IMG/VR virus record: IMGVR_UViG_3300046542_000291
Location: 62,001-126,000 of that record
Strand: one strand, 5' to 3'
Length of the DNA: 64,000 nt
The notes under the pieces are model-generated. The model saw only the letters and a program-made list of their open reading frames with translations. It was not told the DNA's origin and did not search any database. Positions 682-62,249 of the stretch are shown here, one piece after another. Made by a program: the position numbers and the translations under genes. Position 1 is the stretch's first letter, and every line of letters starts with the position of its first letter.

Positions 682-917
682 ATTTGATCCTTGAAGCGGA
701 AGAGGTGTTTAGCCCCCACGCCGAAGGCAACACATAGGACCAGGCACAGCACTGCCCACCATGGGGACTGGTCATTCATGCTACTGAACATCGAGCCGAA
801 GCTTATACCCGATGCCAGCGCCAGTAGGATGAAAACCAGCCAGAAGAACACTTCGCGGAGGTACATCCAGATTACTTGTTTGACGGTAACTTCACGGGCC
901 ATATTTACGTCTGCCAT
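672..917 (-). CDS. small membrane protein (2 TM)
   Basis: two hydrophobic segments. Confidence 0.7.
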   Translation of the reverse strand: MADVNMAREVTVKQVIWMYLREVFFWLVFILLALASGISFGSMFSSMNDQSPWWAVLCLVLCVAFGVGAKHLFRFKDQICK

Positions 918-1390
918 ATTGGAGGTTGAAGATGAGTGAACAGGCTCAGCATGTTATCAAGGGTGGCATGGTCCATTTGGTACAGTAGTTTGGCGATACG
1001 AACACCAACGTCCCAGTTCTTTTCAACGATCGTGATTCGCTGATCACCGTCAGAGAGCACAAAACAAAAATTGAACTCTCCGTTCGAAGGTACCATCATG
1101 TGTTTTGCTGTGACGTAACTACCCTGACGGTAGAACTCATCCAACTGGATAAGTGCAGTCATGTCACCAAACACACGCATCAGGTCACCAATAATCGTAT
1201 TGAGTTCGATAAAACGACTGAGTTGGTGATGCCGTGGAGAATGCGTTTCGATGAACTGCTTACGGGTATCGCCATCCAGAACCATCAACTCATTCTGAAA
1301 AGCCTCCGCTTCCTGGGTAAGGTTGTAGACAACGCCATAGACTGCGTGGTACTCATTACCGTCAATACCAACATGATCATCATTCCACAT
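905..1390 (-). CDS. hypothetical protein
   Basis: ORF with AGGTG RBS downstream of terminator. Confidence 0.75.
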   Translation of the reverse strand: MWNDDHVGIDGNEYHAVYGVVYNLTQEAEAFQNELMVLDGDTRKQFIETHSPRHHQLSRFIELNTIIGDLMRVFGDMTALIQLDEFYRQGSYVTAKHMMVPSNGEFNFCFVLSDGDQRITIVEKNWDVGVRIAKLLYQMDHATLDNMLSLFTHLQPPIWQT

Positions 1391-1427
1391 AGATCACCTA
1401 TTTGCCAAAATTAAAGTGGGACATAAT

Positions 1428-1445
1428 GCCTCCCCGAAGGGAGGC
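1428..1445 (-). terminator. GC-rich cUUCGg hairpin terminator (repeat family)
   Basis: GCCTCCC-TTCG-GGGAGGC on minus strand. Confidence 0.8.
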
Positions 1446-1599
1446 AAGAAGCGGACCTAGCAACCTAGGACCAGGGGAAGGTCGATTACAATCCCCAAAG
1501 TGTACGGACTCGAACCGCACGTGTCACACGCTACATTGTTAAAGAGCATCGTAAAGGAGCAGAGGTAACCAGGAACCAATAGCTCTATATAATTACACA
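1446..1599 (-). ncRNA. putative structured non-coding RNA with boxA and T-loop hairpin
   Basis: no credible ORF; minus strand has TGCTCTTTAACA (1537-1548), GTGCGG-TTCGAGT-CCGTAC (1502-1520), further hairpins, then a terminator. Confidence 0.45.
1537..1548 (-). promoter_or_regulatory. boxA antitermination element (rrn-type)
   Basis: 12/12 match to rrn boxA consensus TGCTCTTTAACA in an intergenic region, in the transcribed orientation. Confidence 0.6.
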
Positions 1600-2022
1600 C
1601 TAAACGATTGGATCATGGCCAACGGGTTCAACCGTGGTCCATGCCAGATCAGTCGGTGTAATGAGTGCCTCACCCAAACGGATGAGAGACTCTGTTCGTA
1701 GGTATTGATGATTCACGATATTGAACCGACCACCCACCGCATGTTCATATTGCTTGAACAAACGATTGATAGCCAGATCCCGATCCGATTGGACCTCGTC
1801 GTCTTTCCGAGGAAGCGGCCGTTCATCTTCAGGCCACAGTACAATAAAGCGGTAGTTGTCTACACCGTATTCCACGTGGTATGAATATTGATGCACGTTG
1901 AAATGTTCGCACTCCAGTTCGGTGTACGATTCGATAGTTGTCGTTGACTCACCAGTTAAAGCATTAAACGAGGCAAGCCTACGTCCCTTGGTTGTATCTA
2001 CGATAACCAGGCTGGCCGACAT
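1600..2022 (-). CDS. hypothetical protein
   Basis: TAATG coupling with upstream gene. Confidence 0.75.
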   Translation of the reverse strand: MSASLVIVDTTKGRRLASFNALTGESTTTIESYTELECEHFNVHQYSYHVEYGVDNYRFIVLWPEDERPLPRKDDEVQSDRDLAINRLFKQYEHAVGGRFNIVNHQYLRTESLIRLGEALITPTDLAWTTVEPVGHDPIV

Positions 2023-2678
2023 TACGCGGCCACTGCTTGGCGGTTGTGCTTGTTGCGGGTACGGATCACTTCACGGGTCAGTTGAATCTGCACTTCTTCC
2101 GAGAAGATCTCCGGGAATGCCCGACTCAACGCCACCGCAGCCATTTCTTCAGCTTGCTGGATGTCGATGTAGTTCGTCAGGATGATCCCGCGGTGATAGA
2201 TGAAACAGTGGTGCCAGCTACCGTTCAGGTACAGGTCACCTTCGAAACCACCATAGGTGAGGGTTTCGTCGTTAGGACCGTCGCGGTACACATCCAGCTG
2301 TACGTTGCGATCCATGTGCATTTGCAGCAGGTCATTGCCCGTACCACCGAAGATGGTCGGACGCTTACGGCCGGTTACCACGTCCTGGATGGAATCCATC
2401 AGGCGAGGCAGTTCAGAAACCAGCTCCTGGAGATCACAAGCTTTGCTCATGGCATCCATGAATCGTTTGGCCAGGAAGTCGTACTCCGGGCCAGTCCACT
2501 GCCGTTGTTCGGCAGCGATGATGTGTACGCCGAACCAAGCATAGCCGTTGGCATGCTTTGCCTTCACACAGAGGTGAGGGATGTTGTCTTCACCCGACTG
2601 ATGATTCGTGGTGTAGTTTTCGATGCGTTTGATGACCAGGGTAATCAAACCCTTTTCGTCGATAATTTGAGTAGACAT
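2022..2678 (-). CDS. hypothetical protein (C-terminal -AVAA)
   Basis: 218-aa ORF, AGGA RBS; weakly similar to 33481..34194. Confidence 0.8.
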   Translation of the reverse strand: MSTQIIDEKGLITLVIKRIENYTTNHQSGEDNIPHLCVKAKHANGYAWFGVHIIAAEQRQWTGPEYDFLAKRFMDAMSKACDLQELVSELPRLMDSIQDVVTGRKRPTIFGGTGNDLLQMHMDRNVQLDVYRDGPNDETLTYGGFEGDLYLNGSWHHCFIYHRGIILTNYIDIQQAEEMAAVALSRAFPEIFSEEVQIQLTREVIRTRNKHNRQAVAA

Positions 2679-2772
2679 GGGTGGTTCCTTTTGAACTTAG
2701 AATCTCTGGGTGGAGTTGAGGCCTCTTTTATCTCAACAAATAATAATCGTACGTAGTTCTTTAAAAGGAAAC

Positions 2773-3441
2773 TCAGTCGCGATTGAGACAGTTGCCGAAC
2801 TTTTGTTCTGCTTGGTATTGAATCTTCTTGGTGATGCTGTCCAACGTACTATCGAAGTTGCACACGAAGTCAATGGTGAAGTTGATCCCTTTGAGGATGT
2901 CTTCGCTATTGTCCGTGATGAACTGCGCCAGCTTCTTGTTGGAATGACCTGTATCAGTTGCTGCGTCTTCCTGCATCCGGGTAAGTAAACGTTGGATTAC
3001 AGTTGAGTCAGCCAGATCGGCAATCCGGGTAGTGGTCAGGAAGTAATCGTTGGTGCCCTTATGACGGACAACAAACAAACGACCAGCCCCTTTACTCGAA
3101 TATTCTTTACGATCTAACAGAAGACTTTCATCGATCAGGTCCCCTTCCAGCTCTGCAGCCGAGAAACGATGTGGTTGAGTAAGCATCCACAGTTCCAGCT
3201 CAGCGCCGCGTTCAATATGTTTAGCCAGCTCCCCGCCAAACTGTTTTGGATGACGCCCCATCACCCGACGAATAACGGTGGTCCAATTGTTCGTTTCCGA
3301 CAACCACACATCGCCAGTGTCCTTGACCACGATAGCGTAGAAGCCACCGGGGATCTTGGTCTTTGGTGCGGTGGTCTGGCCGGTCCAGTTAGCCATGTAA
3401 CGCTTCAACACACCACGTGCAGTGTTATAACGGTTGAACAT
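2773..3441 (-). CDS. protein with two degenerate GIY-YIG-like repeats
   Basis: GGFYAIVVKDTGDVWLSET and GRLFVVRHKGTNDYFLTTT follow the GIY-x-YIG spacing but lack the YIG glycine; directly downstream of an early promoter. Confidence 0.55.
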   Translation of the reverse strand: MFNRYNTARGVLKRYMANWTGQTTAPKTKIPGGFYAIVVKDTGDVWLSETNNWTTVIRRVMGRHPKQFGGELAKHIERGAELELWMLTQPHRFSAAELEGDLIDESLLLDRKEYSSKGAGRLFVVRHKGTNDYFLTTTRIADLADSTVIQRLLTRMQEDAATDTGHSNKKLAQFITDNSEDILKGINFTIDFVCNFDSTLDSITKKIQYQAEQKFGNCLNRD

Positions 3442-3507: not shown

Positions 3508-3516
3508 GTAATATAG
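3508..3516 (-). promoter_or_regulatory. phiKZ-type early promoter (CTATATTAC)
   Basis: matches phiKZ virion-RNAP consensus TATATTAC; recurs before genes. Confidence 0.8.
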
Positions 3517-16006: not shown

Positions 16007-16309
16007 TTACTTAAAGTAGTAGGTGCGGGAAACCATCTTACTGCTGCGGGGGTCATCCCGGTGGAGCGAGTAGCTGAGGAACGCGGGTTTCTTGTCCAAC
16101 TTCAGAAGCGCCAGCTTAACCAGATCTGGATAGTCAAACACGGACGCAAACAATTCACGGGCGCGACTGTAGTCCCGCATACGAAACGCTTTCGCATGAT
16201 CGGGCGTGGTGGTCAGGATCAGTGAATCCACATCAGGGCGAGCAACCGCGATGTAGTGGGCACCTTCCTCTCCAGGAACTTTGATAGTGATGAAGAATGG
16301 GTAGTTCAT
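16007..16309 (-). CDS. hypothetical protein
   Basis: AAGGA RBS; FFITI...HAKAF...ARELF module. Confidence 0.75.
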   Translation of the reverse strand: MNYPFFITIKVPGEEGAHYIAVARPDVDSLILTTTPDHAKAFRMRDYSRARELFASVFDYPDLVKLALLKLDKKPAFLSYSLHRDDPRSSKMVSRTYYFK

Positions 16310-16336
16310 GATAATCCTTATTTACACAAAAAGAAA

Positions 16337-16356
16337 AGGGTCCTTGGTGGGACCCT
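16337..16356 (-). terminator. intrinsic terminator
   Basis: AGGGTCC-CACCAA-GGACCCT followed by TTTTCTTTTTG on minus strand. Confidence 0.7.
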
Positions 16357-16368
16357 ACTCAACACGAC

Positions 16369-16727: not shown

Positions 16728-16736
16728 GTAATATAG
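16728..16736 (-). promoter_or_regulatory. phiKZ-type early promoter
   Basis: CTATATTAC with upstream AT-rich element. Confidence 0.85.
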
Positions 16737-24531: not shown

Positions 24532-24540
24532 GTAATATAG
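24532..24540 (-). promoter_or_regulatory. phiKZ-type early promoter
   Basis: CTATATTAC. Confidence 0.85.
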
Positions 24541-25530: not shown

Positions 25531-25978
25531 GTTCAGTACTCTCTTCTTTGGGGACGTACACGAAGGCATCCAGGTTAAAGCAGATAGCTTGGATGTCCAT
25601 TCTTTTGGCCTCAATCTGGCGAGCTTCATGCTCAATCTGAGACCGGTTGGGGTTTCCCTTGAACAGGGTCATTTCAATGTGCCACCCCATTTGTTTCAGG
25701 CGGAACACCAGATGACGTGGCCCGTTGTACGGATCGATCTTTTGTGGCTGACCTGTTTCCAGTTCAATCACCTTCAGGTAGTGCTCGTAATGGGCACGAA
25801 CCAGATCCTGACCACCAACTTCGTGACCATTGATGATTACCCACAGGCAAGGCTTGCAGTTGTTGAACGGTGTTTCTGCTTTCACACACAGCGAACGTGT
25901 AAACAGATCCGTTGAACTGAGGAACTTGTCGCCGTACAGCTCGCCCAAGATCTTTGGGGTATTGATGAAGTTCTTCAT
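25520..25978 (-). CDS. hypothetical protein
   Basis: coupled ORF. Confidence 0.75.
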   Translation of the reverse strand: MKNFINTPKILGELYGDKFLSSTDLFTRSLCVKAETPFNNCKPCLWVIINGHEVGGQDLVRAHYEHYLKVIELETGQPQKIDPYNGPRHLVFRLKQMGWHIEMTLFKGNPNRSQIEHEARQIEAKRMDIQAICFNLDAFVYVPKEESTEHDA

Positions 25979-26694: not shown

Positions 26695-28071
26695 TCAATC
26701 GATTGGGGTACCTTCGTCATCGTTGTCAGGTTCACCAGCAACGACGTAGTCCAGATGGATGGCCACCTTAGACCCGTACGGTGATTGACGGCACAGTTCC
26801 CAAGCCCCATTACAGGTGGGTTTGTCACTGACAAACTTGAAACCCAGATCGTAGAGGTACTTCACAACCGGATCTTCCAGTTGCTTCTCGTGGATAGGTT
26901 TCAGGTTAATCCACCACGTGCGGTTGTTACGCCCTTCCGGCAAACGGAACTCCAAAAGAGTGTGGGCCAATGGAGCAGTGATCTCAATCACTTCGCCATT
27001 CCGCAGGGTAGTGCCTTGACGCTTCACGTGATCAGCCAGCCCGGTAGGAACAACGTTGCGGGTCATCAGGTAACCCTGAGTGATCGATGCAATGTCATTG
27101 GCTACGTAGCTGTGGAACTCCTCCGATTGGAACATGTCGCAGATACTGAGACGAACCATATCGGTGGACAGACGTTCGAAGTCAGAGTCGTAGTTCATGC
27201 GAATCTCATTAAGACGATTCTCCATGTACTCGATTTCGACGTCGGTTTGACTTTCTTCGTGAAGCTTCCGCAACCAGTTAGGCATTTCACCGTAGCGGCG
27301 AGAGATGAGGTGTGTCAACAAACGTAACGGACCGATATGAGAGACGCCGCCGGTCGACTTGTGGATCACGCGCAACATGCTCAGCAACTTGTCTTCAGTG
27401 ATACCGAGATGATCGGCTACGCAGTTGAAACGCACCGAGACACTGAACGCAGCGCGCTCAACCAGGTAGTTGTGCAGTTGCATGAACAAGTTCTGGTTCC
27501 GTGACATGGCTTCAGCATGAGCCATGGTGTCGACTTCGATGATCGGATCTTCAACACGATCCCAGCCATCACCAGGAATGTCATCAAGCGAAGTACCAAA
27601 ACTGTCATCCTCTGGAGGAGCGTCAGTCAGTTGTGGCGTACCGCCACTGGCGAGTACGTGACGAACATCCCAGAGAGGCTGGTGAAGCATGTCGTGGAGA
27701 TCCTTTGGGTCAGGAATAGCCATTGCCTGAACTTGAAGGATCTTTAGCGAGTTGATGAGTTGGGTGTAGAAGCCCCCGTCAGTCAAGCTTTCTGGCAAGA
27801 GACGGGCTACCCAACCAGGGCGCTGGTCAGTACCGGTACGGTAACCGATGAGCGCCAAAGCGGCGCATGTACTGGTGAAACGACTTGCACTGAAGTATTG
27901 GAACATTTCCTGCACTGTCGTTTCGACTGTGAGGATAGACAAATCAACCTGGTTGGCAAGCTCATCCATGGTGATTGGTGACAATGTCTTGACCCGGGGT
28001 GCCAGGATGGTGATAATGGCGATAGCGGTTTGTGTAAGCTTGCCAAGGTGTTCATTAGACAGCATGTGCAT
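26695..28071 (-). CDS. hypothetical protein with duplicated HTH-like domain
   Basis: AGGAG RBS at MHMLS; two related helical repeats. Confidence 0.8.
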   Translation of the reverse strand: MHMLSNEHLGKLTQTAIAIITILAPRVKTLSPITMDELANQVDLSILTVETTVQEMFQYFSASRFTSTCAALALIGYRTGTDQRPGWVARLLPESLTDGGFYTQLINSLKILQVQAMAIPDPKDLHDMLHQPLWDVRHVLASGGTPQLTDAPPEDDSFGTSLDDIPGDGWDRVEDPIIEVDTMAHAEAMSRNQNLFMQLHNYLVERAAFSVSVRFNCVADHLGITEDKLLSMLRVIHKSTGGVSHIGPLRLLTHLISRRYGEMPNWLRKLHEESQTDVEIEYMENRLNEIRMNYDSDFERLSTDMVRLSICDMFQSEEFHSYVANDIASITQGYLMTRNVVPTGLADHVKRQGTTLRNGEVIEITAPLAHTLLEFRLPEGRNNRTWWINLKPIHEKQLEDPVVKYLYDLGFKFVSDKPTCNGAWELCRQSPYGSKVAIHLDYVVAGEPDNDDEGTPID

Positions 28072-32339: not shown

Positions 32340-32348
32340 GTAATATAG
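32340..32348 (-). promoter_or_regulatory. phiKZ-type early promoter
   Basis: CTATATTAC. Confidence 0.85.
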
Positions 32349-42588: not shown

Positions 42589-42597
42589 GTAATATAG
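42589..42597 (-). promoter_or_regulatory. phiKZ-type early promoter (drives Prs/NAMPT operon)
   Basis: CTATATTAC. Confidence 0.85.
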
Positions 42598-47592: not shown

Positions 47593-47899
47593 CGTATTTC
47601 CCTAGTAGTTCTGTAACAGCAAAATTGGAATTGCGGAGGCTATACGAATTGATGAGTGCACCCAAGGCAGCAGCCATCGACACTTGATCCGGTAGCCCAA
47701 TGAAACCTTTTGGTGCCTCCATCAACCAAGGCCTGACGCGCCTGAAAGGAGGCATGCAATAAAAGCCATCGATGTCTGTGTAAGGCTTAGGGGCCTCAAG
47801 GCAACGATAACTGATAAGGTACTTCTTTACAGGACCAGGTAAGGCCCACGGGGTTTGTCGCCGTTCATAGCACATCGCGGCACCTTTAAACGAAGCCAC
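47435..47899 (-). CDS. hypothetical protein (overlaps thyA 5' end)
   Basis: only ORF covering 47593-47885; 158-nt overlap makes its 3' part doubtful. Confidence 0.45.
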   Translation of the reverse strand: MASFKGAAMCYERRQTPWALPGPVKKYLISYRCLEAPKPYTDIDGFYCMPPFRRVRPWLMEAPKGFIGLPDQVSMAAALGALINSYSLRNSNFAVTELLGKYDASIPSVPGKHFEARRGQGGPDQYRNDLQLRRHASLRHLRLDRSQTNDKVRT

Positions 47900-49253: not shown

Positions 49254-49963
49254 CAGTCGAGTCTCGGTTTGAGGAAGATGGCTTTCGCCGCCCCCACGGC
49301 TTGAATGTGATCGAACAGAGCGCTGTTGCCAACGTTCTGCAAGACCTGCAGTTGTTCTTCGTTGATGGGTGAACCATTCCAGTTGAACCCAGCACGATCC
49401 TTGATGTCCCAGAAGGTTTCCAGGAGACGGTTAGGGATCAAATGCACACAGTGAATAGTAAGCACTTTCTCCGTGGTCGGAAAACGACGAAGGTAGTTGG
49501 TATCCTGCGCATGGAGCGTAGTCCCCACAACAATGGTTTCTACGTTCTCTTCCAACACATTAAGAGGAGTCTCGTAAAACTCCCCACCGCGTGTTTCGTA
49601 CCGACAGCGATAACTGGCCAAAACGTCTTTGTTAACGTAACGGATGTAGTCCTGGATCGGGGTTCCCGTTCCGTCATCCATGGTGCTCTTGGCCTGGATT
49701 TCTTCGGTCGTGTTCAGCGCCATGCGCAGCACGTCGAATGTGTCTTGGCCGGTCATGGTGATAGCCGTGAAGGCGAACTGAATTTTGACGAGTTCCTTGG
49801 AATCTTTGAACGCATCTTCCGGCGCATACAGAATGTGCTGGGCGAAGGTGTCTTGGATTTCGTAGATTTCGCTATCGTTCATCGACACCTCCTTCGTCAG
49901 GCGTGCCAAGTTCAGGAATTCACCAACAGGATTATTGCGAATCCCAGCGAAGAGTTCAATCAT
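49253..49963 (-). CDS. hypothetical protein
   Basis: coupled ORF. Confidence 0.8.
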   Translation of the reverse strand: MIELFAGIRNNPVGEFLNLARLTKEVSMNDSEIYEIQDTFAQHILYAPEDAFKDSKELVKIQFAFTAITMTGQDTFDVLRMALNTTEEIQAKSTMDDGTGTPIQDYIRYVNKDVLASYRCRYETRGGEFYETPLNVLEENVETIVVGTTLHAQDTNYLRRFPTTEKVLTIHCVHLIPNRLLETFWDIKDRAGFNWNGSPINEEQLQVLQNVGNSALFDHIQAVGAAKAIFLKPRLD

Positions 49964-50727
49964 TGTTTACCGCCTTGAAGGAGGGTGAGTTTAGGGGGAC
50001 CCTTATAACGCGAAGGGCCTTTGAATACAGGGGTGGTTGGAAGATCACCGAAGTCCAGCAATGGGCTTGGCATTTCCAGAGCCGCGGAGAGGAAGTCTTC
50101 TTCCGTCCCAGTGAAGCCTTTTGCACGGGCCAGGTCGTAAGCCGACATGTGGTCACCCTTCGAGGCAACCTGCGTAGTGCGTTCTTCGAGCGATGGACGC
50201 TTCATCAACGCATCCCGCACCTGACCAGCCTTTTCACGGAAAGTCGCAGTGAACTTTTTCGGATAAACGTCGTTCGCTGCACCCGGTCCCATGAACGGTG
50301 GGTTACCAATGTCGTCTTTCTGCTCCGGGGTGAATACCGGAAACAGGTCCAGCGGAATACCACCGTTGTTAGCCATCATCTCCAGTTCCGCTTCCACCCC
50401 AGGGAACGGCGCCAGAGTTGTGTGCATTTCGTCCAGTGGAACTTGAACGGCCAGCAGAGAATGCCAAGGGGCTTCCACCTGTTGTACGACACCACCAGAT
50501 TTGCAGCTGAAACTGAAACCTTCGTCGGTGTACTTCAGGTCACGAATGGCCTGCATCGACATGTTGATTACAGAAACCCCGGTGTCATCACAGACGGAGT
50601 TCAGGTATGCGTTGTCGGAATCCCAGGCACGAATCACTACGTTCATGCGCCCGAAACCGTTCTCACCAAACCACTCGTAAAAAGCGTTCAGGATGACGTG
50701 GTTCAGCGAGGTCAAAGGCTTGCTCAT
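49960..50727 (-). CDS. sspB: SspB-like ClpXP adaptor
   Basis: ILNAFYEWFGEN...VINMSMQAIRDL...FSFSCKSGGV...PWHSLLAV parallels SspB LRAFYEWLLDN...VLNIAPRAVGNL...FNARFGG...PLAAVLAI; low-complexity linker; C-terminal PKLTLLQGGK. Confidence 0.75.
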   Translation of the reverse strand: MSKPLTSLNHVILNAFYEWFGENGFGRMNVVIRAWDSDNAYLNSVCDDTGVSVINMSMQAIRDLKYTDEGFSFSCKSGGVVQQVEAPWHSLLAVQVPLDEMHTTLAPFPGVEAELEMMANNGGIPLDLFPVFTPEQKDDIGNPPFMGPGAANDVYPKKFTATFREKAGQVRDALMKRPSLEERTTQVASKGDHMSAYDLARAKGFTGTEEDFLSAALEMPSPLLDFGDLPTTPVFKGPSRYKGPPKLTLLQGGKQ

Positions 50728-50739
50728 GTTTACTCCTAG

Positions 50740-50988
50740 TTAGTTATGTTCTTCAACTGTAGGCTCAAGAATCCACTTGAAGGGAATACCGAGTCTATCG
50801 ACGTACCCCAAAAGGGTTTCCAAACGTACAGCCCCGTCTTCGCGGTTTACTTTGAGGCGGCTATAAGTCTCCCTGCTAATGCAGAGAAGACTGGCCATTT
50901 GCTTGCCGTACAGGCGGTGCTTCTTTTGGTAACTAAACACGGCATCGATCAGCATCTGCTTCACTGCCGGGATTTGGTCACTCAACAT
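50740..50988 (-). CDS. XRE-type helix-turn-helix protein
   Basis: GKQMASLLCISRETYSRL...LETLLGYVDRLG. Confidence 0.7.
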   Translation of the reverse strand: MLSDQIPAVKQMLIDAVFSYQKKHRLYGKQMASLLCISRETYSRLKVNREDGAVRLETLLGYVDRLGIPFKWILEPTVEEHN

Positions 50989-51029
50989 ATTTGGAACCCC
51001 AGTATATTTACGAGATTGTATTCAACGTT

Positions 51030-51038
51030 GTAATGTAG
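51030..51038 (-). promoter_or_regulatory. early promoter variant (CTACATTAC)
   Basis: one mismatch; upstream TTCAAG context; precedes HTH-sspB operon. Confidence 0.6.
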
Positions 51039-51055
51039 ACTTGAAACTTTTTGCG

Positions 51056-51151
51056 TTAATTCTTGCGGAACAGGCCCAACATACCGGCGACAGCGCCGAG
51101 CATAATGAGGCTACCGATAGCCATCAGACCGTATTGAAAGAAGTCGTGCAT
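51056..51151 (-). CDS. 31-aa single-TM peptide
   Basis: MHDFFQYGLMAIGSLIMLGAVAGMLGLFRKN. Confidence 0.5.
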   Translation of the reverse strand: MHDFFQYGLMAIGSLIMLGAVAGMLGLFRKN

Positions 51152-51154
51152 TGT

Positions 51155-51316
51155 TCACCCGATTGGATAATGGAAGAGGCCGAAGATACCGGCCAAGGTT
51201 AGGACAACCCCGAGAACGTAAACGTCACCGCCGGGGTATTTGTATGGGTTAAAGCAGCCATTCAGGACGACACACAGTACACCCGCAAAGAAGCAGACCA
51301 ATGAAAGCTGGAACAT
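51155..51316 (-). CDS. 53-aa 2-TM peptide
   Basis: MFQLSLVCFFAGVLCVVL...VLGVVLTLAGIFGLF. Confidence 0.5.
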   Translation of the reverse strand: MFQLSLVCFFAGVLCVVLNGCFNPYKYPGGDVYVLGVVLTLAGIFGLFHYPIG

Positions 51317-51510
51317 TCGATATTCACCAAGTAGCCCGAGATAGCGAAGAGGGCAACAGCCGCCCCCATCAAGTAATAAGAGAACGTTCGTAATTCTTTT
51401 AGTTCGTTACGCCCATCATCTCCGTGAGAAGTTACTACCCAGAAGACCATCCCGAAACACAGGCAGATTACCCCGGTGGAAAACATTAGAGCTGTCCAGT
51501 TAATATCCAT
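51262..51510 (-). CDS. small 2-TM membrane protein
   Basis: AGGAG RBS; two hydrophobic segments. Confidence 0.7.
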   Translation of the reverse strand: MDINWTALMFSTGVICLCFGMVFWVVTSHGDDGRNELKELRTFSYYLMGAAVALFAISGYLVNIECSSFHWSASLRVYCVSS

Positions 51511-51536
51511 GTTTAGTCTCTAATAAGCGACATAAC

Positions 51537-51554
51537 GCCTCCCCGGAGGGAGGC
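51537..51554 (-). terminator. hairpin terminator (UCCG loop variant)
   Basis: GCCTCCCTCCGGGGAGGC. Confidence 0.8.
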
Positions 51555-51561
51555 TTATGTT

Positions 51562-51909
51562 TCAGTATGTCAAAACCACAGCCTTGCCGTAGTCGTTCAT
51601 CATGCAGGAATTGTACGACGCCATGTAGGTGTCCATTGGGGAAAGTTTGTTATTCCACACTGGATCGACGTCTTGGATTACTTTAGGAAGAACACTGTAA
51701 AGAACGTTATCTTTATTCTTCACAACGTAGCCCTTGAGAGCCTGGAGATTTTTACGCCAAGACTCTTCAGTCTCGCCGCGCTGCTTTGCTTCCGTGGTAG
51801 CCTTGGTCATTAGCGCCAAGCCTTCACAGTAGTTCAGATCAGCCATCACCGCTGTAGCCATTGCTTGCATTGGAACTGAGAACAGAACCAGTACAACCAA
51901 AAGCCGCAT
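51562..51909 (-). CDS. secreted protein (signal peptide, Cys pair)
   Basis: MRLLVVLVLFSVPMQAMA; similar layout to 24606 and 25096; start uncertain. Confidence 0.7.
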   Translation of the reverse strand: MRLLVVLVLFSVPMQAMATAVMADLNYCEGLALMTKATTEAKQRGETEESWRKNLQALKGYVVKNKDNVLYSVLPKVIQDVDPVWNNKLSPMDTYMASYNSCMMNDYGKAVVLTY

Positions 51910-51968
51910 TACGTGTGTTAAACATTGCATCACGTTGTACCTTGGTTGAGGGATCAGAATATAGGACA

Positions 51969-52469
51969 CTACTCGGAGTCTTCACCGGACATATAGAAGA
52001 GAGCATTGTTGTGATTAAACCCATCGGTAGCGACACGGAAGATGTAACTCAACCGACTTATTCCGTCACCAATGTAGTCGTATGCGCTGATGCCACAATA
52101 GAGCCGGTTAGGGTTCTTGGCATCCAATGTACTCACCAACGAGTCGATGTACTCCATGGCGGGCACAAAGCCAAACGTTTTCTCGTCCTGTCTCCAAGAG
52201 TCATTCGTTAGGCTGGTAATGTACCGTTCCGTGACGTCATCGCTTTGATCTTGACAGAAGCCTGCAACCGCAGACAAGATGTATAGATCGGGATCGAGGT
52301 CCATGTGTGCATACGTTTCATTAAACGCGTACAACCACTCACCTTTCTCAGCAATGATCTTTTCTAACCACCCGTGTTCAGCCGTACCATTAACGACAAC
52401 GTCTGTAAAGAGCTCAGGGCAAGCTGCCGCAAGATACTCTTTACGAATAATGCGAAACCGTTGAGCCAT
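51969..52469 (-). CDS. hypothetical protein
   Basis: ORF in gene train. Confidence 0.75.
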   Translation of the reverse strand: MAQRFRIIRKEYLAAACPELFTDVVVNGTAEHGWLEKIIAEKGEWLYAFNETYAHMDLDPDLYILSAVAGFCQDQSDDVTERYITSLTNDSWRQDEKTFGFVPAMEYIDSLVSTLDAKNPNRLYCGISAYDYIGDGISRLSYIFRVATDGFNHNNALFYMSGEDSE

Positions 52470-52471
52470 TA

Positions 52472-52630
52472 TTATTGTCCCAGTGAACAGAGTTGTTTAC
52501 ACTCCGACACTTGTTTAGCCAGCTTCTGCAAAAGATCAGCCTGGTTGTTCGTGAGTTCCTTAAGTTCAAGGACCTCTTCTTCCAACTTGGCAATACGCTC
52601 TTCTTTCTTTGCTTTCTCTGGACAGCCCAT
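52472..52630 (-). CDS. 52-aa coiled-coil protein
   Basis: MGCPEKAKKEERIAKLEEEVLELKEL...; GGAG RBS. Confidence 0.6.
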   Translation of the reverse strand: MGCPEKAKKEERIAKLEEEVLELKELTNNQADLLQKLAKQVSECKQLCSLGQ

Positions 52631-52643
52631 AGGGATTCTCCGA

Positions 52644-53060
52644 CTAGATATTTAACCGATAATTCCAGTCCCCGTGATGGGTACCGTTATTAAAGGCTTC
52701 GATCTGATGCGGCTCCATACCTGTCGCGTGCAGGTGGAACGTCATGTTCAAGCGACGGGTCATGTACCGCTCCGACAACTCTACCGCATAAGTGTCGTCA
52801 TTGCAGTTAATGGTTACCTTCGCCACGTGGATGGGTTTCATCTTGCACGACTTATCCCAGATGTCAAAAACCTTAATGTCCTCGTACCGATCCAACTTGG
52901 GAACAATACGAAAAGCAAAAATGGGAACTTCGTTCACACCACTCACTCGGTCTGGTGTAATCCAAACCGGATGGCCAATGTGCTTCTGACAGAATCCACG
53001 GATACTGTCATTGAGGTCTCCCTTCACCCCACTGTACAAGGGAAGATGAACGACGATCAT
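52644..53060 (-). CDS. hypothetical protein, beta-rich paralog family
   Basis: VFDIWD...HVAKVTINCNDDTYAV. Confidence 0.75.
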   Translation of the reverse strand: MIVVHLPLYSGVKGDLNDSIRGFCQKHIGHPVWITPDRVSGVNEVPIFAFRIVPKLDRYEDIKVFDIWDKSCKMKPIHVAKVTINCNDDTYAVELSERYMTRRLNMTFHLHATGMEPHQIEAFNNGTHHGDWNYRLNI

Positions 53061-53452
53061 ACAGCGATACTCCCTTGATACTGTTGCTTACCGAGTTCTT
53101 GAGTAATCTCCAAGACAGCGGTAAATGGGCGGGTCTTCTGGTTAGCCTTGGGTTTAACCCACCAATACTTTTTCTTCTGCATGTCGAACTCGAGTTCAAC
53201 CACAGGGGCATTGTCTTCCTCGTCGAAGAAGGTGAACACTGTACGGGCGGGTCGTTCAATAGGGACTTCCCGGTACCACTGAACCTTACTGACTTGTTGC
53301 ATGTCAGGTGGGTAAGCGGTAGCCAGGATGTCTACGGATTCAAAACTGGATAGCTTGTCCCCGTAATGGGCGAGGCTGATCGGGTACCCGGACTTGGAGA
53401 AGTCCAAGAGGTAGTTCAACGTCACCAGCGTTTTGAGAATCTTCGGTTCCAT
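53057..53452 (-). CDS. hypothetical protein, beta-rich paralog family
   Basis: VFTFFD...VVELEFDMQKKKYW. Confidence 0.75.
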   Translation of the reverse strand: MEPKILKTLVTLNYLLDFSKSGYPISLAHYGDKLSSFESVDILATAYPPDMQQVSKVQWYREVPIERPARTVFTFFDEEDNAPVVELEFDMQKKKYWWVKPKANQKTRPFTAVLEITQELGKQQYQGSIAV

Positions 53453-53876
53453 CTGGCAGTTTCTCTCGAATGAAGAACATCATATCGATAGGCCAGGTTT
53501 CACTTGGATCAGTCCAGGTCAGGACAATACGCTTGTTGATACGGCTGGTACGAACAAACGCCACTTCCCGTCCTTCACGAACAACGGAGATGAGTTCAGA
53601 CTTCTCACCTTCACCACGTGTAATGGTGAATGTAAAGCCCTCAGCTGGCCCCAGAGAGTGGCGATGGTTCAATCCACCCAGATCTTCCGGTGTCCAGTAG
53701 ATCGCGGTAGGAGTCAACGCCAGGATCTCTCCAAGGATCTTCTCCCCTAGCTCCTCAATCCGAGTATCCCCGATTTGGGTAGCAAAGGCGTACTCCTTGA
53801 TATTGGCAGGTTGCCCCTTTAACGGAGGCATGGCTGCCAATGAGGCTGGGAGCTCGGTGATGATCATATCGGTCAT
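53340..53876 (-). CDS. hypothetical protein
   Basis: ATGA-coupled; EVAFVRT. Confidence 0.7.
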   Translation of the reverse strand: MTDMIITELPASLAAMPPLKGQPANIKEYAFATQIGDTRIEELGEKILGEILALTPTAIYWTPEDLGGLNHRHSLGPAEGFTFTITRGEGEKSELISVVREGREVAFVRTSRINKRIVLTWTDPSETWPIDMMFFIREKLPDGTEDSQNAGDVELPLGLLQVRVPDQPRPLRGQAIQF

Positions 53877-54511
53877 TTGTAAATTACCAAGTATCGGATT
53901 GAAGTGTTGGGTGCTTCGTTCAGCGCTTGGGTGATGATAACCTCACCCGTCTTGGCTGAATAAGCATGGGACCACGGACTCATTCCATCGATCATGAGGT
54001 TGACAATGTTGTAAGTCTCGTTCAGTGGGATACTGCCATGTGGATTGAACTTGTGAGTCAGTTGATGACGCACATCTTTGAACAGGGGGAACACTACCAG
54101 GATTGGGATGATCCGTTCGATCTCACGGTTCTGGAAAGGCGTGAACGTTCCGGCCACGTTTGCTACATCAACGTACTCATGATTCATCTTCTCGCCATCA
54201 GCCCCGAACTGTAAGGTGAGGGTGACATCGGGAATACCGAGTACTGTGTTGTTACACACTTCGTATTTCCCGGTATGCGGGTTGATCCGCACGTAGGCCA
54301 CACAGGTATCATCATGATCCCCGTAAGCCCACAGTTCAATGACTTGCCAGCCTTCACGGAACTTGTATGGCTTGACGACAGCATGGTAGGTGTTAACGAC
54401 ACCAGCTACGTTGGAATCTACGCGGGTAACCTTCAAGTTGATAAGCCCCAGATCACACGTTTGGATCTGACCGTCTTTAGTACGACGCAGGTTGATAGTT
54501 GCGATACGCAT
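53873..54511 (-). CDS. hypothetical protein, beta-rich paralog family
   Basis: VIELWAY...CVAYVRINPHTGKYEV; GAGGAG RBS. Confidence 0.8.
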   Translation of the reverse strand: MRIATINLRRTKDGQIQTCDLGLINLKVTRVDSNVAGVVNTYHAVVKPYKFREGWQVIELWAYGDHDDTCVAYVRINPHTGKYEVCNNTVLGIPDVTLTLQFGADGEKMNHEYVDVANVAGTFTPFQNREIERIIPILVVFPLFKDVRHQLTHKFNPHGSIPLNETYNIVNLMIDGMSPWSHAYSAKTGEVIITQALNEAPNTSIRYLVIYK

Positions 54512-56233: not shown

Positions 56234-56242
56234 GTAATATAG
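56234..56242 (-). promoter_or_regulatory. phiKZ-type early promoter
   Basis: CTATATTAC. Confidence 0.85.
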
Positions 56243-58653: not shown

Positions 58654-58662
58654 GTAATATAG
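58654..58662 (-). promoter_or_regulatory. phiKZ-type early promoter
   Basis: CTATATTAC. Confidence 0.85.
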
Positions 58663-61625: not shown

Positions 61626-62249
61626 TTACACCATTGGAAGAACGATCTGTTTGGCCTGGTTCTGATACTTACCACCACGGTCAGCATAGGACACAGCGCA
61701 GGCTTGGTCGAGTTCCAGGAAGACCAGTTGCAGCACACCTTCATTTGCGTAGAAGGTGTTAGGCTGGTTCGTGGTGTTGTGGAACTCGAATGTGATGTAG
61801 CCTTCCCAACCTGGTTCGATCGGTGTACATAGGCAGTTCCAACCAACGCGTGCGATGGTGGACTTACCGATGCAGAGCGCGATCAGGTCGCGTGGCATCT
61901 TCACGTATTCCTTACTCCGGGTCAGCAAGAAGCCGCCTGGTGGAACAACGATCTTACTGCCGGTTACCGAATGGAACTGATCTTCACGGATGTTCTTGTA
62001 GTCCAAAGCTTCGTGCTCTGGAATAGCTCCCGTGATGAGGTACTTCAGGCGTTGCCAGAATGTAGTCTTCGGTGGAATGAAGAGCTTGAACTCTGGGGCC
62101 GCCCGAAGGTCGTAACCGCCCGACGAAACGCCATACGAAGCAATGCGCTCATCGTCGTCGCCTGTCTTGACAGACGTAGGTGAGAACGGTTGGATCATCT
62201 TTTCGTTTTCGCAACGGTCGAGGATCGACTTGTCAGAAAGAAGGGACAT
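61626..62249 (-). CDS. dcd: dCTP deaminase
   Basis: SYGVSSGGYDLR, GKSTIARVG, TPIEPGWEG, YANEG, SYADRGGKYQNQ. Confidence 0.95.
   Translation of the reverse strand: MSLLSDKSILDRCENEKMIQPFSPTSVKTGDDDERIASYGVSSGGYDLRAAPEFKLFIPPKTTFWQRLKYLITGAIPEHEALDYKNIREDQFHSVTGSKIVVPPGGFLLTRSKEYVKMPRDLIALCIGKSTIARVGWNCLCTPIEPGWEGYITFEFHNTTNQPNTFYANEGVLQLVFLELDQACAVSYADRGGKYQNQAKQIVLPMV

Follow-up and report, generated by a model that had tools for sequence, protein, structure and literature searches.

What does an exact copy of a host ribosomal-RNA boxA signal do in the genome of a phage that is expected to transcribe its DNA with its own polymerases? The question arises from a 209-nt gap between two minus-strand ORFs in a 64,000-nt stretch of DNA (the window; positions 62,001 to 126,000 of the IMG/VR record IMGVR_UViG_3300046542_000291). 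By a crude ORF count only about 16 gaps of 200 nt or more exist in the 310,396-bp genome. An earlier note had described the gap as a non-coding unit whose minus strand carries an anti-Shine-Dalgarno-like pyrimidine tract, a perfect rrn boxA, a hairpin with a canonical tRNA T-loop, two further hairpins and a UUCG terminator.

First we verified these elements. All motifs listed in the note are present on the minus strand, such that its observation is confirmed. The terminator hairpin runs 18 nt beyond the lower limit of 1446 that the note had set. The exact boxA is the only copy in the window, and GCTCTTTWAYMW occurs once in the whole genome. The 24-nt leader plus boxA motif has no second copy at up to 3 mismatches, while shuffles gave 0. 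The RNA folds better than shuffled sequences (z = -3.1).

Features of the locus in window coordinates, ordered along the direction of minus-strand transcription
Position	Strand	Feature	Sequence or remark
3508-3516	-	Early-type promoter core heading the three-gene operon that ends in the element	CTATATTAC
2022-2678	-	Homologue of phiKZ gp287	
1600-2022	-	Homologue of phiKZ gp287.1	
1583-1599	-	Conserved promoter-proximal motif	TGTGTAATTATATAGAG; TSS predicted near 1585 +/- 3
1548-1570	-	Pyrimidine-rich 5' leader	
1553-1570	-	Pyrimidine tract	GGTTACCTCTGCTCCTTT
1547-1558	-	Conserved core of the leader, candidate antisense seed	TCCTTTACGAT(G)
1536-1548	-	rrn-type boxA	TGCTCTTTAACAA
1537-1548	-	Exact boxA match	TGCTCTTTAACA
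1521-1535	-	Spacer and junction, predicted mostly single-stranded	contains the conserved GAC(A)C
1502-1520	-	T-loop hairpin, 6-bp stem with a 7-nt loop	GTGCGG-TTCGAGT-CCGTAC
1474-1496	-	Hairpin 2, loop containing AATCGAC	GGGGA...TCCCC
1456-1469	-	Hairpin 3	CCTAG-GTTG-CTAGG
1422-1445	-	Putative intrinsic terminator and its tail	hairpin and ATTATG tail
1428-1445	-	Terminator hairpin	GCCTCCC-TTCG-GGGAGGC
1422-1425	-	Possible late-type start for the next gene	TATG
905-1390	-	Downstream gene (161 aa)	

To find out whether the element is maintained in evolution we searched for it in other phages. Searches of relatives with tblastn identified the two upstream genes as homologues of phiKZ gp287.1 and gp287 (PHROG families 16349 and 15052, function unknown). 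The blastn hits that were obtained with a query starting at window position 900 lie in the gp287 homologue and do not cover the gap, which would otherwise have made the gap a broken gene. A protein-seeded search of IMG/VR found no loci, while a DNA pattern search was successful. In total the element was found at the syntenic place, after the gp287/gp287.1 homologues, in at least 15 distinct Pseudomonas phiKZ-like phages and viral or metagenome contigs, spanning at least five genera. The note had named the lack of a discrete transcript, together with non-conservation of boxA and the T-loop at the syntenic locus in relatives, as what would refute it; boxA and the T-loop hairpin are both conserved there, such that the note is not refuted on this point. 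Pattern scans of metagenomes and bacterial genomes returned mostly false hits, i.e. tRNA anticodon arms reading GCTCTTTTACAAGGAG, tmRNA or tRNA 3' ends at integration sites and scattered chance matches. Only 7 hits occurred in 596 Gb of bacterial genomes and none in Pseudomonas, so the combination of boxA and T-loop is not borrowed from a bacterial locus.

In the alignment of 15 homologues (A4) 11 of 12 boxA positions are invariant (GCTCTTT-ACAA in 15 of 15). Within the spacer A40, C41 and G44 of the alignment are invariant. The T-loop hairpin retains GGTT-GA-TCC in all aligned members, while loop position 3 varies between C, A and G. Its stem pairs change on both sides, for example GTGCGG/CCGTAC, GTAAGG/CCTTAC, GATGGG/CCCATC and GTTGGG/CCCAAC. 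For hairpin 2 five of 6 pairs show changes on both sides. Its loop motif ATCGRC is conserved in most members, but RVTF4, MG34 and UViG21 carry another hairpin at this position. Hairpin 3 covaries within the clade formed by the window and D6 (CCTAG/CTAGG, TCTGG/CCAGA, CCTGG/CCAGG, CTTGG/CCAAG), while Temi and PA1C carry GTGAC/GTCAC instead. Overall 90% of cells in the alignment are paired compared to 72% in shuffles, and 28 double-change cells are found compared to 9.5 in shuffles and 9 or fewer in slid controls. RNAalifold found compensatory changes in 15 of 20 pairs. A kissing interaction between the T-loop and the loop of hairpin 2 (UCGA:UCGA) was considered but rejected, because the C-to-A change in the T-loop is not compensated. 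A covariance model of the element (R1) detected exactly one copy in the genome (E = 5e-15) and no full homologue in phiKZ, 201phi2-1 or Viktualia. No open frame is conserved across the element, and it matches no Rfam family.

Is the element transcribed as a discrete RNA? The phage comes from a rhizosphere metagenome, and among sequencing runs only DNA runs contain it, such that transcription in this phage is inferred from its relatives. In phiKZ the counterpart at the same locus has a mapped start (P129, 262671), a mapped intrinsic terminator (T118, 262760) and an 89-nt transcription unit (TU196). It was listed as a 5'UTR-derived ncRNA candidate upstream of PHIKZ288 (Putzeys et al., bioRxiv 10.1101/2023.10.13.562163, Table S7), without function, boxA, target or conservation. 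The phiKZ RNA shares the leader plus boxA core (TTCCTTTACGAT-TGCTCTTT), the TATG-type start and a terminator hairpin. It differs in lacking the T-loop hairpin and hairpins 2 and 3, in place of which a small UUCAG/CUGAA hairpin is found, and its boxA is degenerate (GCUCUUUUAUC, ending in UUUUAUC). A motif related to the promoter-proximal motif and ending in TATG sits at the same place in D6, Psa21, RVTF4, Temi, PA1C, PhiPA3, Phabio and phiKZ, and in phiKZ the start maps to the TATG. The phiKZ late promoter p119L shares CTATGTAG. Since the window has TATAG rather than TATG, its own promoter is inferred. At the other end the 7-bp GC-rich stem with its UUCG loop covaries, but its tail AUUAUGU is U-poor, such that a consensus terminator scan did not list it. 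The hairpin is of the standard terminator type of this genome, in which CCTTCGGGG occurs 37 times and GGCTTTATG 23 times.

We next asked whether the boxA has the sequence that NusB-NusE recognizes. The window carries the core UGCUCUUUA with G2, C5, U6 and U8 intact, the critical positions being taken from PMC3177189, and positions G2-U8 are invariant in the 15 homologues and in phiKZ. The sequence equals the E. coli rrn boxA-spacer oligonucleotide and the P. aeruginosa rrn leader, while a BLAST search of the E. coli genome with the boxA-spacer was uninformative at this query length. In the genomes tested boxA is single-copy. The predicted unpaired probability of its 9-nt core is 0.57-0.76 in 13 of 15 homologues compared to about 0.43 for the whole RNA, but only 0.22-0.31 in PhiPA3 and Phabio. 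The phage encodes no NusB, S10 or NusG of its own. In the rRNA antitermination complex (NusB-NusE-boxA, NusA, NusG, SuhB, S4) boxA acts in rrn leaders and spacers. The identity extends over 12-13 nt, and in several members the NusA-binding spacer AAUUUA is present as well. Here, however, boxA lies in a short terminated RNA of a phage that does not use host RNA polymerase, without 16S or 23S downstream and without boxC, and stands directly before a putative intrinsic terminator.

The pyrimidine leader directly 5' of boxA provided a new lead. Its core is conserved in the window, phiKZ, PhiPA3, PA1C and Temi. Within it UCCUUUACGAUG is a perfect 12-nt complement of the Shine-Dalgarno region of the mRNA of chmA, the nuclear-shell (chimallin) gene, at 310319-310330 (-) of the whole genome (G000). 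This site is the best of 514 translation-start regions in the genome, and the 12-mer occurs nowhere else in it. The target gene belongs to PHROG 4795, 'nuclear shell protein' (E = 3e-163). In PhiPA3 the longest complement to the leader in the whole genome is a 14-mer at the chmA ribosome-binding site, in phiKZ it is an 11-mer plus a G-U pair at the same site, and in D6, where pairing occurs in a different register, it is a 12-mer in the chmA 5'UTR plus UUUCCUUU against the Shine-Dalgarno sequence. These are top or near-top matches genome-wide. Two compensatory differences support pairing: GAUG/CAUC in the window and PhiPA3 against GAUU/AAUC in phiKZ, and UUUCUCUU/AAGAGAAA in D6 against UUUUCUU/AAGAAAA in Psa21. 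The complementarity is, however, weak in Temi and PA1C (11 of 12 with a mismatch, at another site) and absent in Phabio, yet all three keep boxA and the T-loop. The universal function must therefore lie in boxA and the T-loop and not in the seed. Cognate leader-UTR pairs are not better than non-cognate ones, because the chmA motif UCGUAAAGGA is itself widely conserved, and duplex energies are only modestly better than shuffles in several phages. UCGUAAAGGA was not enriched over a reversed-pattern control in five genomes and was rejected as a general ribosome-binding-site motif or regulon signal. A pairing of the leader with 16S rRNA around nt 1493-1511 (GGUUACC...UUACGA) was taken as coincidence, since the GGUUACC part is specific to the window. 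The chmA site is the very place at which 11-mer antisense oligomers abolish ChmA synthesis in phiKZ (Gerovac et al., Nature 2025, PMC12571901). With a putative single-stranded 5' seed, a structured body and a putative terminator the RNA would resemble base-pairing sRNAs with anti-Shine-Dalgarno seeds. In contrast to the synthetic oligomers, the RNA would be natural and phage-encoded, would act on an essential early gene of the phage itself, and has its seed abutting a boxA.

The explanation that we tentatively favour, with a probability of roughly 0.4, is that the gap encodes a trans-acting small RNA of about 160 nt. It would be made either from its own start near 1585 or as the 3' end of the early operon that begins at about 3516, would end at the terminator hairpin and would be the expanded homologue of the 89-nt phiKZ RNA. 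In this view it has three modules: a single-stranded pyrimidine leader acting as anti-chmA seed; directly next to it the host-type boxA, which in the cytoplasm should be bound by host NusB-S10, either sequestering these rRNA-antitermination factors or using them to modulate or protect the sRNA; and the T-loop hairpin, two further hairpins and the terminator, forming a stable scaffold and perhaps a protein-binding surface. Our analysis establishes the presence of the element, its conservation and covariation, its single copy, its non-coding nature, the discrete transcript in phiKZ and the complementarity to chmA. Transcription in this uncultured phage, pairing in vivo, the direction of regulation, and NusB-S10 binding with its consequence are inferences from sequence. 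The model is weakened by the degenerate boxA of phiKZ and by the absence of boxA from the RNA at this locus in 201phi2-1 and Viktualia, and it leaves the role of the T-loop unexplained. The interpretation of the earlier note is thus supported in part: the element is non-coding and almost certainly a discrete minus-strand small RNA, and the anti-Shine-Dalgarno-like tract has a specific complementary ribosome-binding site, while the proposed titration of Nus factors or tRNA-recognising proteins remains a hypothesis and a decayed tRNA cassette is not supported.

A stronger version, which the data allow but which we consider unlikely, is a bifunctional RNA whose seed shuts down translation of the shell-protein mRNA while its boxA captures host NusB-S10, making it a natural Nus-factor sponge that cripples host rRNA antitermination in phages whose own transcription needs neither host RNA polymerase nor Nus factors. 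Nucleus-forming jumbo phages are models for viral compartmentalisation and candidates for phage therapy, and almost nothing is known about their regulatory RNAs. The boxA signal should be useless to a phage with its own polymerases. If either module works as proposed, the RNA would be the first natural regulator of chimallin synthesis, the first natural boxA decoy, or both.

Among the alternatives a pure Nus-factor sponge survives best, although it appears less likely than the favoured reading. Here the essential job of the RNA would be to display boxA, plus the NusA-binding spacer, on a nuclease-resistant scaffold. Titration of free NusB-S10 would make host rrn antitermination and ribosome biogenesis fail and would free nucleotides for the phage, and the chmA complementarity would be incidental, arising only because the leader is anti-Shine-Dalgarno-like. 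In agreement with this, boxA and the T-loop are the only universally invariant parts, and Phabio, Temi and PA1C keep them without convincing chmA pairing. The 16-nt GCUCUUUAACAAUUUA in D6, RVTF4 and Phabio equals the E. coli rrn boxA-spacer that binds NusA and NusB-NusE, and the discrete short transcript ends about 90 nt after boxA. Since phage transcription is compartmentalised and independent of host RNA polymerase, a cytoplasmic trans role fits better than a cis role, and the phage lacks its own NusB, S10 and NusG. Transcribed consensus boxA on plasmids reportedly competes for NusB (Friedman et al. 1990). Against this reading, support comes from sequence alone rather than from binding or abundance data, boxA is degenerate in phiKZ and missing in the 201phi2-1 lineage, and the RNA would face thousands of nascent rRNA boxA sites. 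It also does not explain the non-random, genome-top complementarity to chmA in four of five genomes scanned.

A cis-acting leader or antitermination gate is more doubtful. In this scenario boxA, with the following hairpin in the part of boxB, would load factors on the transcribing polymerase and control read-through of the terminator into the variable gene cluster downstream, as at lambda nut sites or rrn leaders; a variant is plain premature-termination control of the next gene. The order promoter, boxA, spacer, hairpin and terminator would fit. In phiKZ both the terminated 89-nt form and a 621-nt read-through form covering PHIKZ288 (TU197) start at P129, and the authors of the phiKZ map interpret such RNAs as products of conditional termination. 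About 5 kb of small minus-strand genes follow the element in the window, with no further standard terminator found. However, the transcribing enzymes are phage polymerases that lack the alpha subunit and canonical factor sites, and we found no literature linking Nus factors to jumbo phages. Only one boxA exists per 300-kb genome. The downstream gene has no homologue in the locus of any relative, the downstream genes of the different clades are unrelated to one another, and in contig L021, one of the contigs carrying the element, it follows a different gene, such that this is not a gene-specific leader. In this phage and the D6 clade a TATG, possibly the start of the downstream gene, stands right after the terminator. 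Furthermore, rrn-type complexes act mainly on Rho-dependent and not on intrinsic terminators. The resemblance to lambdoid nut sites is limited to the order boxA, spacer, hairpin in a promoter-proximal position upstream of a terminator in a phage: the hairpin has a conserved 7-nt T-loop and not a GNRA-like pentaloop, no N-like protein was identified, neighbouring proteins having no recognisable family, there is one site per genome, and the RNA polymerase is of phage origin.

A decayed tRNA gene or a tRNA-like decoy for proteins such as RNase P or anticodon nucleases is rejected or very unlikely. The hairpin is a canonical T-arm in sequence and geometry (GGTTCGAGTCC with a 7-nt loop, U at loop position 1 and A at position 5 being kept), and the phage carries four tRNA genes about 10 kb away. 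Yet ARAGORN found no tRNA or tmRNA in the window, and Rfam gave no tRNA, tmRNA or Y-RNA-like match at the gathering threshold or at E <= 10. Acceptor, D and anticodon arms are missing, and the compensatory changes across genera indicate selection rather than decay. A DNA-level element such as an origin, packaging site or operator, suggested merely by the single copy per genome, is equally improbable, given that compensatory changes preserve strand-specific hairpins including G-U pairs, that the phiKZ counterpart is transcribed with defined ends and that the locus lies far from the genome termini.

Finally, we considered which sequences could serve as promoters for the region. The 9-mer TTGATCAAC was rejected as a promoter, since it lies inside genes without shared flanks. 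In contrast, the early-type core that heads the three-gene operon occurs 18 times in the genome, always firing on the minus strand and with conserved flanks, and resembles the phiKZ early promoter TATATTAC.

The 209-nt gap lies between two ORFs and was read 5' to 3' on the minus strand. It contains an AT-rich conserved motif, a pyrimidine-rich leader, an rrn-type boxA and four hairpins (see the table below). All features that the earlier note had listed from the sequence alone were found, so that its observation holds; the only correction is that the terminator runs 18 nt beyond the lower coordinate assigned in that note. The 24-nt leader-plus-boxA string has no second copy in the window even at 3 mismatches. 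The boxA pattern occurs once in the complete 310,396-bp genome (G000), of which the window is bases 62001-126000. The RNA is predicted to fold better than shuffled versions (z about -3.1).

Positions of the features of the element, its neighbourhood and the further loci mentioned in the text
Feature	Sequence record	Position	Strand	Motif or remark
gp287 homologue	window	2022-2678	minus	
gp287.1 homologue	window	1600-2022	minus	
AT-rich conserved motif	window	1599-1583	minus	TGTGTAATTATATAGAG
Pyrimidine-rich leader	window	1570-1548	minus	ends in TCCTTTACGAT
boxA	window	1548-1536	minus	TGCTCTTTAACAA
T-loop hairpin	window	1520-1502	minus	6-bp stem, loop TTCGAGT
Hairpin 2	window	1496-1474	minus	GGGGA...TCCCC
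Hairpin 3	window	1469-1456	minus	CCTAG-GTTG-CTAGG
Terminator hairpin	window	1445-1428	minus	GCCTCCC-UUCG-GGGAGGC, followed by ATTATG
Downstream gene (161 aa)	window	905-1390	minus	
Early-type promoter core ahead of the three-gene operon	window	3516-3508	minus	CTATATTAC
Further copies of this motif	window	16728-16736, 24532-24540, 32340-32348, 42589-42597, 56234-56242, 58654-58662	minus	GTAATATAG on the plus strand
Largest apparently non-coding gaps	window	25636-25974, 16057-16368, 47617-47885		339, 312 and 269 nt
chmA homologue (627 aa)	G000, outside the window	308426-310309	minus	
Palindrome in the chmA 5'UTR	G000, outside the window (and loci L087-L099)	about 310340-310350		CTTGATCAAG
Four tRNA genes	G000, outside the window	49269-54153	plus	Tyr, Asp, Asn, Trp
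TSS P129	phiKZ	262671		upstream sequence ends ...TTCTATGT
Intrinsic terminator T118	phiKZ	262760		
Second ncRNA candidate, upstream of PHIKZ034	phiKZ	27554-27684		TGCTCTTTATCTAAATTTA
Different non-coding element at the same locus	201phi2-1 (L010)	2556-3004		T-loop-like hairpin GCAGTAGGTTAGATGCCCTGC
Different non-coding element at the same locus	Viktualia (L011)	2770-3300		
Tandem units	metagenome contig L033	1780-2353		GCTCTTTAACAATTT, T-arm, TAGCCTAGTGGTAAGGC
Tandem units	metagenome contig L063	87-505		GCTCTTTAACAATTT, T-arm, TAGCCTAGTGGTAAGGC
Tandem T-arm-like hairpins	IMG/VR 3300042554_000720 (L013)	1211-1293		GCTCTTTAACAATTT, GTCGG-TTCGATT-CCGAC, GGGG-GTTCGATT-CCCC

The window belongs to an uncultured Pseudomonas phiKZ-like jumbo phage, whose sequence was found only in rhizosphere-metagenome DNA runs. 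The nearest relatives are Psa21, D6 and RVTF4 at 55-58% protein identity. No known function was obtained for the gp287 and gp287.1 homologues. At the DNA level, a query starting at window base 900 gave hits that lie in the gp287 gene and not in the gap.

To test for conservation we compared the corresponding loci. Every relative also has a gap of 140-240 nt after gp287.1, and the gaps align. Pattern scans of IMG/VR and of metagenomes added further members, which gives 15 distinct sequences from Tepukevirus, Pawinskivirus, Miltoncavirus, Phabiovirus and unclassified phages, plus the shorter phiKZ form. In the alignment of the 15 sequences (A4) the invariant columns are GCTCTTT-ACAA, i.e. boxA, a GAC...G junction, and GGTT-GA-TCC, i.e. 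the T-loop hairpin, while the flanking proteins are only 29-58% identical. At the same locus 201phi2-1 and Viktualia hold a different non-coding element of about 430 nt. It is 79% identical between the two phages, with long invariant blocks and the same upstream motif GTGTAAT..TATAGGA, and it contains a T-loop-like hairpin but no boxA and no Rfam match. The CDS annotated over it in Viktualia (CDS0139) is probably spurious.

The structure is supported by covariation. RNAalifold predicts the T-loop hairpin, hairpin 2 and the terminator hairpin, with compensatory changes in 15 of 20 pairs. For the two core helices 90% of the cells are paired compared to 72% in column shuffles, and 28 double-change cells were found compared to 9.5, while no slid register exceeds 9. 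Hairpin 3 covaries within the window/D6 clade. All six frames are closed in every homologue. A covariance model built from A4 finds exactly one copy in this genome (E = 5e-15) and one copy in a distant jumbo-phage contig, where the element follows a different gene. The boxA is single-copy in phiKZ, D6 and Temi, whereas Phabio has one additional, weaker pattern match elsewhere. The combination of boxA and T-loop does not occur beyond chance in 596 Gb of bacterial genomes.

The element is transcribed, at least in phiKZ. For exactly this phiKZ locus the supplement of Putzeys et al. (bioRxiv 10.1101/2023.10.13.562163) lists the TSS P129, the intrinsic terminator T118, an 89-nt gene-free transcription unit (TU196) and a 621-nt read-through unit covering PHIKZ288 (TU197). 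Table S7 of the same work contains it as a '5'UTR-derived' ncRNA candidate, without Northern validation. The upstream middle-promoter unit TU194 also ends at T118, such that the element is also the 3' end of the gp287 operon. A second 5'UTR-derived candidate of Table S7, located upstream of PHIKZ034, contains a boxA-like string ahead of its terminator.

In the phage of the window an early-type promoter core stands ahead of the three-gene operon that ends in the element. It is part of a strongly conserved early-promoter-like motif about 45 nt long with flanks ...AGATTCAC-AAA-GTAATATAG-GCTTTTAAA-GCTTTGAAT, which has 18 copies genome-wide, all oriented to fire on the minus strand, and which resembles the phiKZ early promoter core TATATTAC. 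The conserved motif just upstream of the RNA ends in TATG in most relatives. TATG is the nvRNAP start motif, and the phiKZ late promoter p119L shares CTATGTAG. In the window, 201phi2-1 and Viktualia the motif reads TATAG, such that an independent start in this phage is inferred only. The putative terminator is of the standard type of this genome: hairpins of the type CTCCCTTCGGGGAG occur 26-37 times, and 23 copies of GGCTTTATG suggest fused terminator and TATG-promoter units between genes.

The element is not a leader for a particular gene. The downstream gene has no homologue in any relative's locus, and the downstream genes of the different clades are unrelated to each other. In this phage and the D6 clade a TATG directly follows the terminator, as it does at more than 20 other terminators.

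The boxA sequence TGCTCTTTAACAA equals the E. coli rrn boxA, given as 'CACugcucuuuaacaauuua' (PMC2724277), and the P. aeruginosa rrn leader. In D6, RVTF4 and Phabio the identity extends through the NusA-binding spacer (GCUCUUUAACAAUUUA), and RVTF4 even has the upstream CAC. The crystal-structure work (PMC3177189) defines eight recognised nucleotides, for which transversions at positions 2, 5 and 6 are not tolerated and U8 sits in the NusB-NusE pocket. G2-U8 are invariant in all members, including phiKZ. The core is predicted to be mostly unpaired in 13 of 15 homologues. No NusB, S10 or NusG was found to be encoded by the phage, such that any boxA reader must be a host protein or an unrecognised phage protein. 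A literature search found no paper that links phiKZ-like phages with boxA or Nus factors.

The T-loop hairpin is a textbook T-arm. However, ARAGORN finds nothing in the window, Rfam gives no tRNA, tmRNA or Y-RNA-like match even with permissive settings, no other tRNA arm is present, and the stem is maintained by compensatory substitutions. The element therefore fails the definition of a tRNA, and the 'decayed tRNA' reading is rejected. The hairpin may be a scaffold, a protein site, or the double-stranded RNA site that adjoins the boxA site on NusB-NusE (PMC3177189). The phage carries four tRNA genes about 9-14 kb from the element.

To find a candidate RNA target we scanned the leader against 514 translation-start regions of the genome. 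The top hit is the mRNA of a 627-aa protein that belongs to PHROG 4795, 'nuclear shell protein' (chimallin, ChmA; E = 3e-163). The UCCUUUACGAUG of the putative sRNA is a perfect 12-nt complement of CAUCGUAAAGGA, which contains the Shine-Dalgarno (SD) sequence 9 nt before the AUG. This 12-mer occurs nowhere else in the genome. We then examined the chmA 5'UTRs of 13 phages and scanned the whole genomes of four relatives. In PhiPA3 the best complement to the leader is a 14-mer at the chmA RBS, the longest anywhere in its genome. In phiKZ it is an 11-mer plus a G-U pair at the chmA RBS, among the five best genome-wide. In D6, where the leader differs from that of the window, a 12-mer lies in the chmA 5'UTR 24 nt before the AUG, with UUUCCUUU also matching the SD, and the two matched segments bracket a small palindrome. 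Temi has no exact match of 10 nt or more, but only 11 of 12 with a mismatch elsewhere in the chmA 5'UTR.

Against shuffled leaders the longest perfect match has p <= 0.004 in five phages, and the duplex energy has p <= 0.05 in eight of twelve. Window, phiKZ and PhiPA3 are, however, not independent observations. PA1C has, like Temi, only an 11-of-12 match at another UTR site, and Phabio has no match. Furthermore, cognate pairs are not better than non-cognate ones, because the chmA motif is itself conserved, and the 10-mer motif is not enriched genome-wide. Two differences look compensatory: GAUG/CAUC in window and PhiPA3 compared to GAUU/AAUC in phiKZ, and the loss of one C in the Psa21 leader, matched by the loss of one G in its UTR, relative to D6. 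An 11-mer antisense oligomer against the phiKZ chmA SD abolishes ChmA synthesis and nucleus formation (PMC12571901), such that this site is functionally sensitive. The chmA 5'UTR of all 13 phages examined (loci L087-L099) carries a palindrome between the early promoter and the SD, which could be an operator, a hairpin or a GATC methylation site. The 9-mer TTGATCAAC is also 12-fold over-represented genome-wide (28 copies), but there it lies inside genes.

We tentatively favour a trans-acting sRNA, with a confidence of 0.4. In this view the leader would pair with the chmA ribosome-binding site and dampen or shut off shell-protein synthesis, the adjoining boxA would be occupied by host NusB-S10 in the cytoplasm, and the hairpins would give stability. 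What the analysis shows is the presence of the element, its conservation and covariation, the complementarity to chmA and, from the published map, the transcript in phiKZ. Pairing, regulation of chmA, NusB-NusE binding and an independent transcription start in this phage are inferred, and no function has been shown. The interpretation of the earlier note, a small RNA decoy that titrates Nus factors or tRNA-recognising proteins or else a decayed tRNA cassette, is thus partly supported: the non-coding RNA is in agreement with the data, a Nus-factor decoy remains possible as a hypothesis, and the decayed tRNA is rejected.

A less likely alternative is a pure Nus-factor sponge, which is favoured by the fact that boxA and the T-loop, not the seed, are universal. 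Unlikely, though not excluded, is a cis-acting antitermination or attenuation gate. The promoter-boxA-hairpin-terminator layout and the two transcript forms in phiKZ favour it, while the phage polymerases, the single site per genome and the unrelated downstream genes count against it. A small share is left for mechanisms that we have not thought of. A decayed tRNA or a DNA element is very improbable.

By synteny and sequence the element is a member of the phiKZ PHIKZ288-5'UTR ncRNA family, of which it is an expanded variant. By sequence it carries a bona fide rrn-type boxA, for which the defining activity, i.e. NusB-NusE binding and cis antitermination on host polymerase, would be by analogy only. 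The lambda nut definition fails at boxB. While the phiKZ RNA had been listed before, the boxA, the T-loop module, the conservation across genera and the chmA complementarity appear undescribed in the literature we could search.

The pattern scans also returned sequences of other kinds. Two metagenome contigs (L033 and L063) hold tandem units of about 250-300 nt, each with GCTCTTTAACAATTT, then a T-arm, then a D-arm-like TAGCCTAGTGGTAAGGC. These may be a permuted or rearranged tRNA-like array, and they matched the covariance model R1 only weakly. An unrelated 50-kb viral contig (L013) has GCTCTTTAACAATTT followed by two tandem T-arm-like hairpins, at a match frequency near chance level. By a crude ORF count the three largest apparently non-coding gaps in the window are larger than the one studied here.
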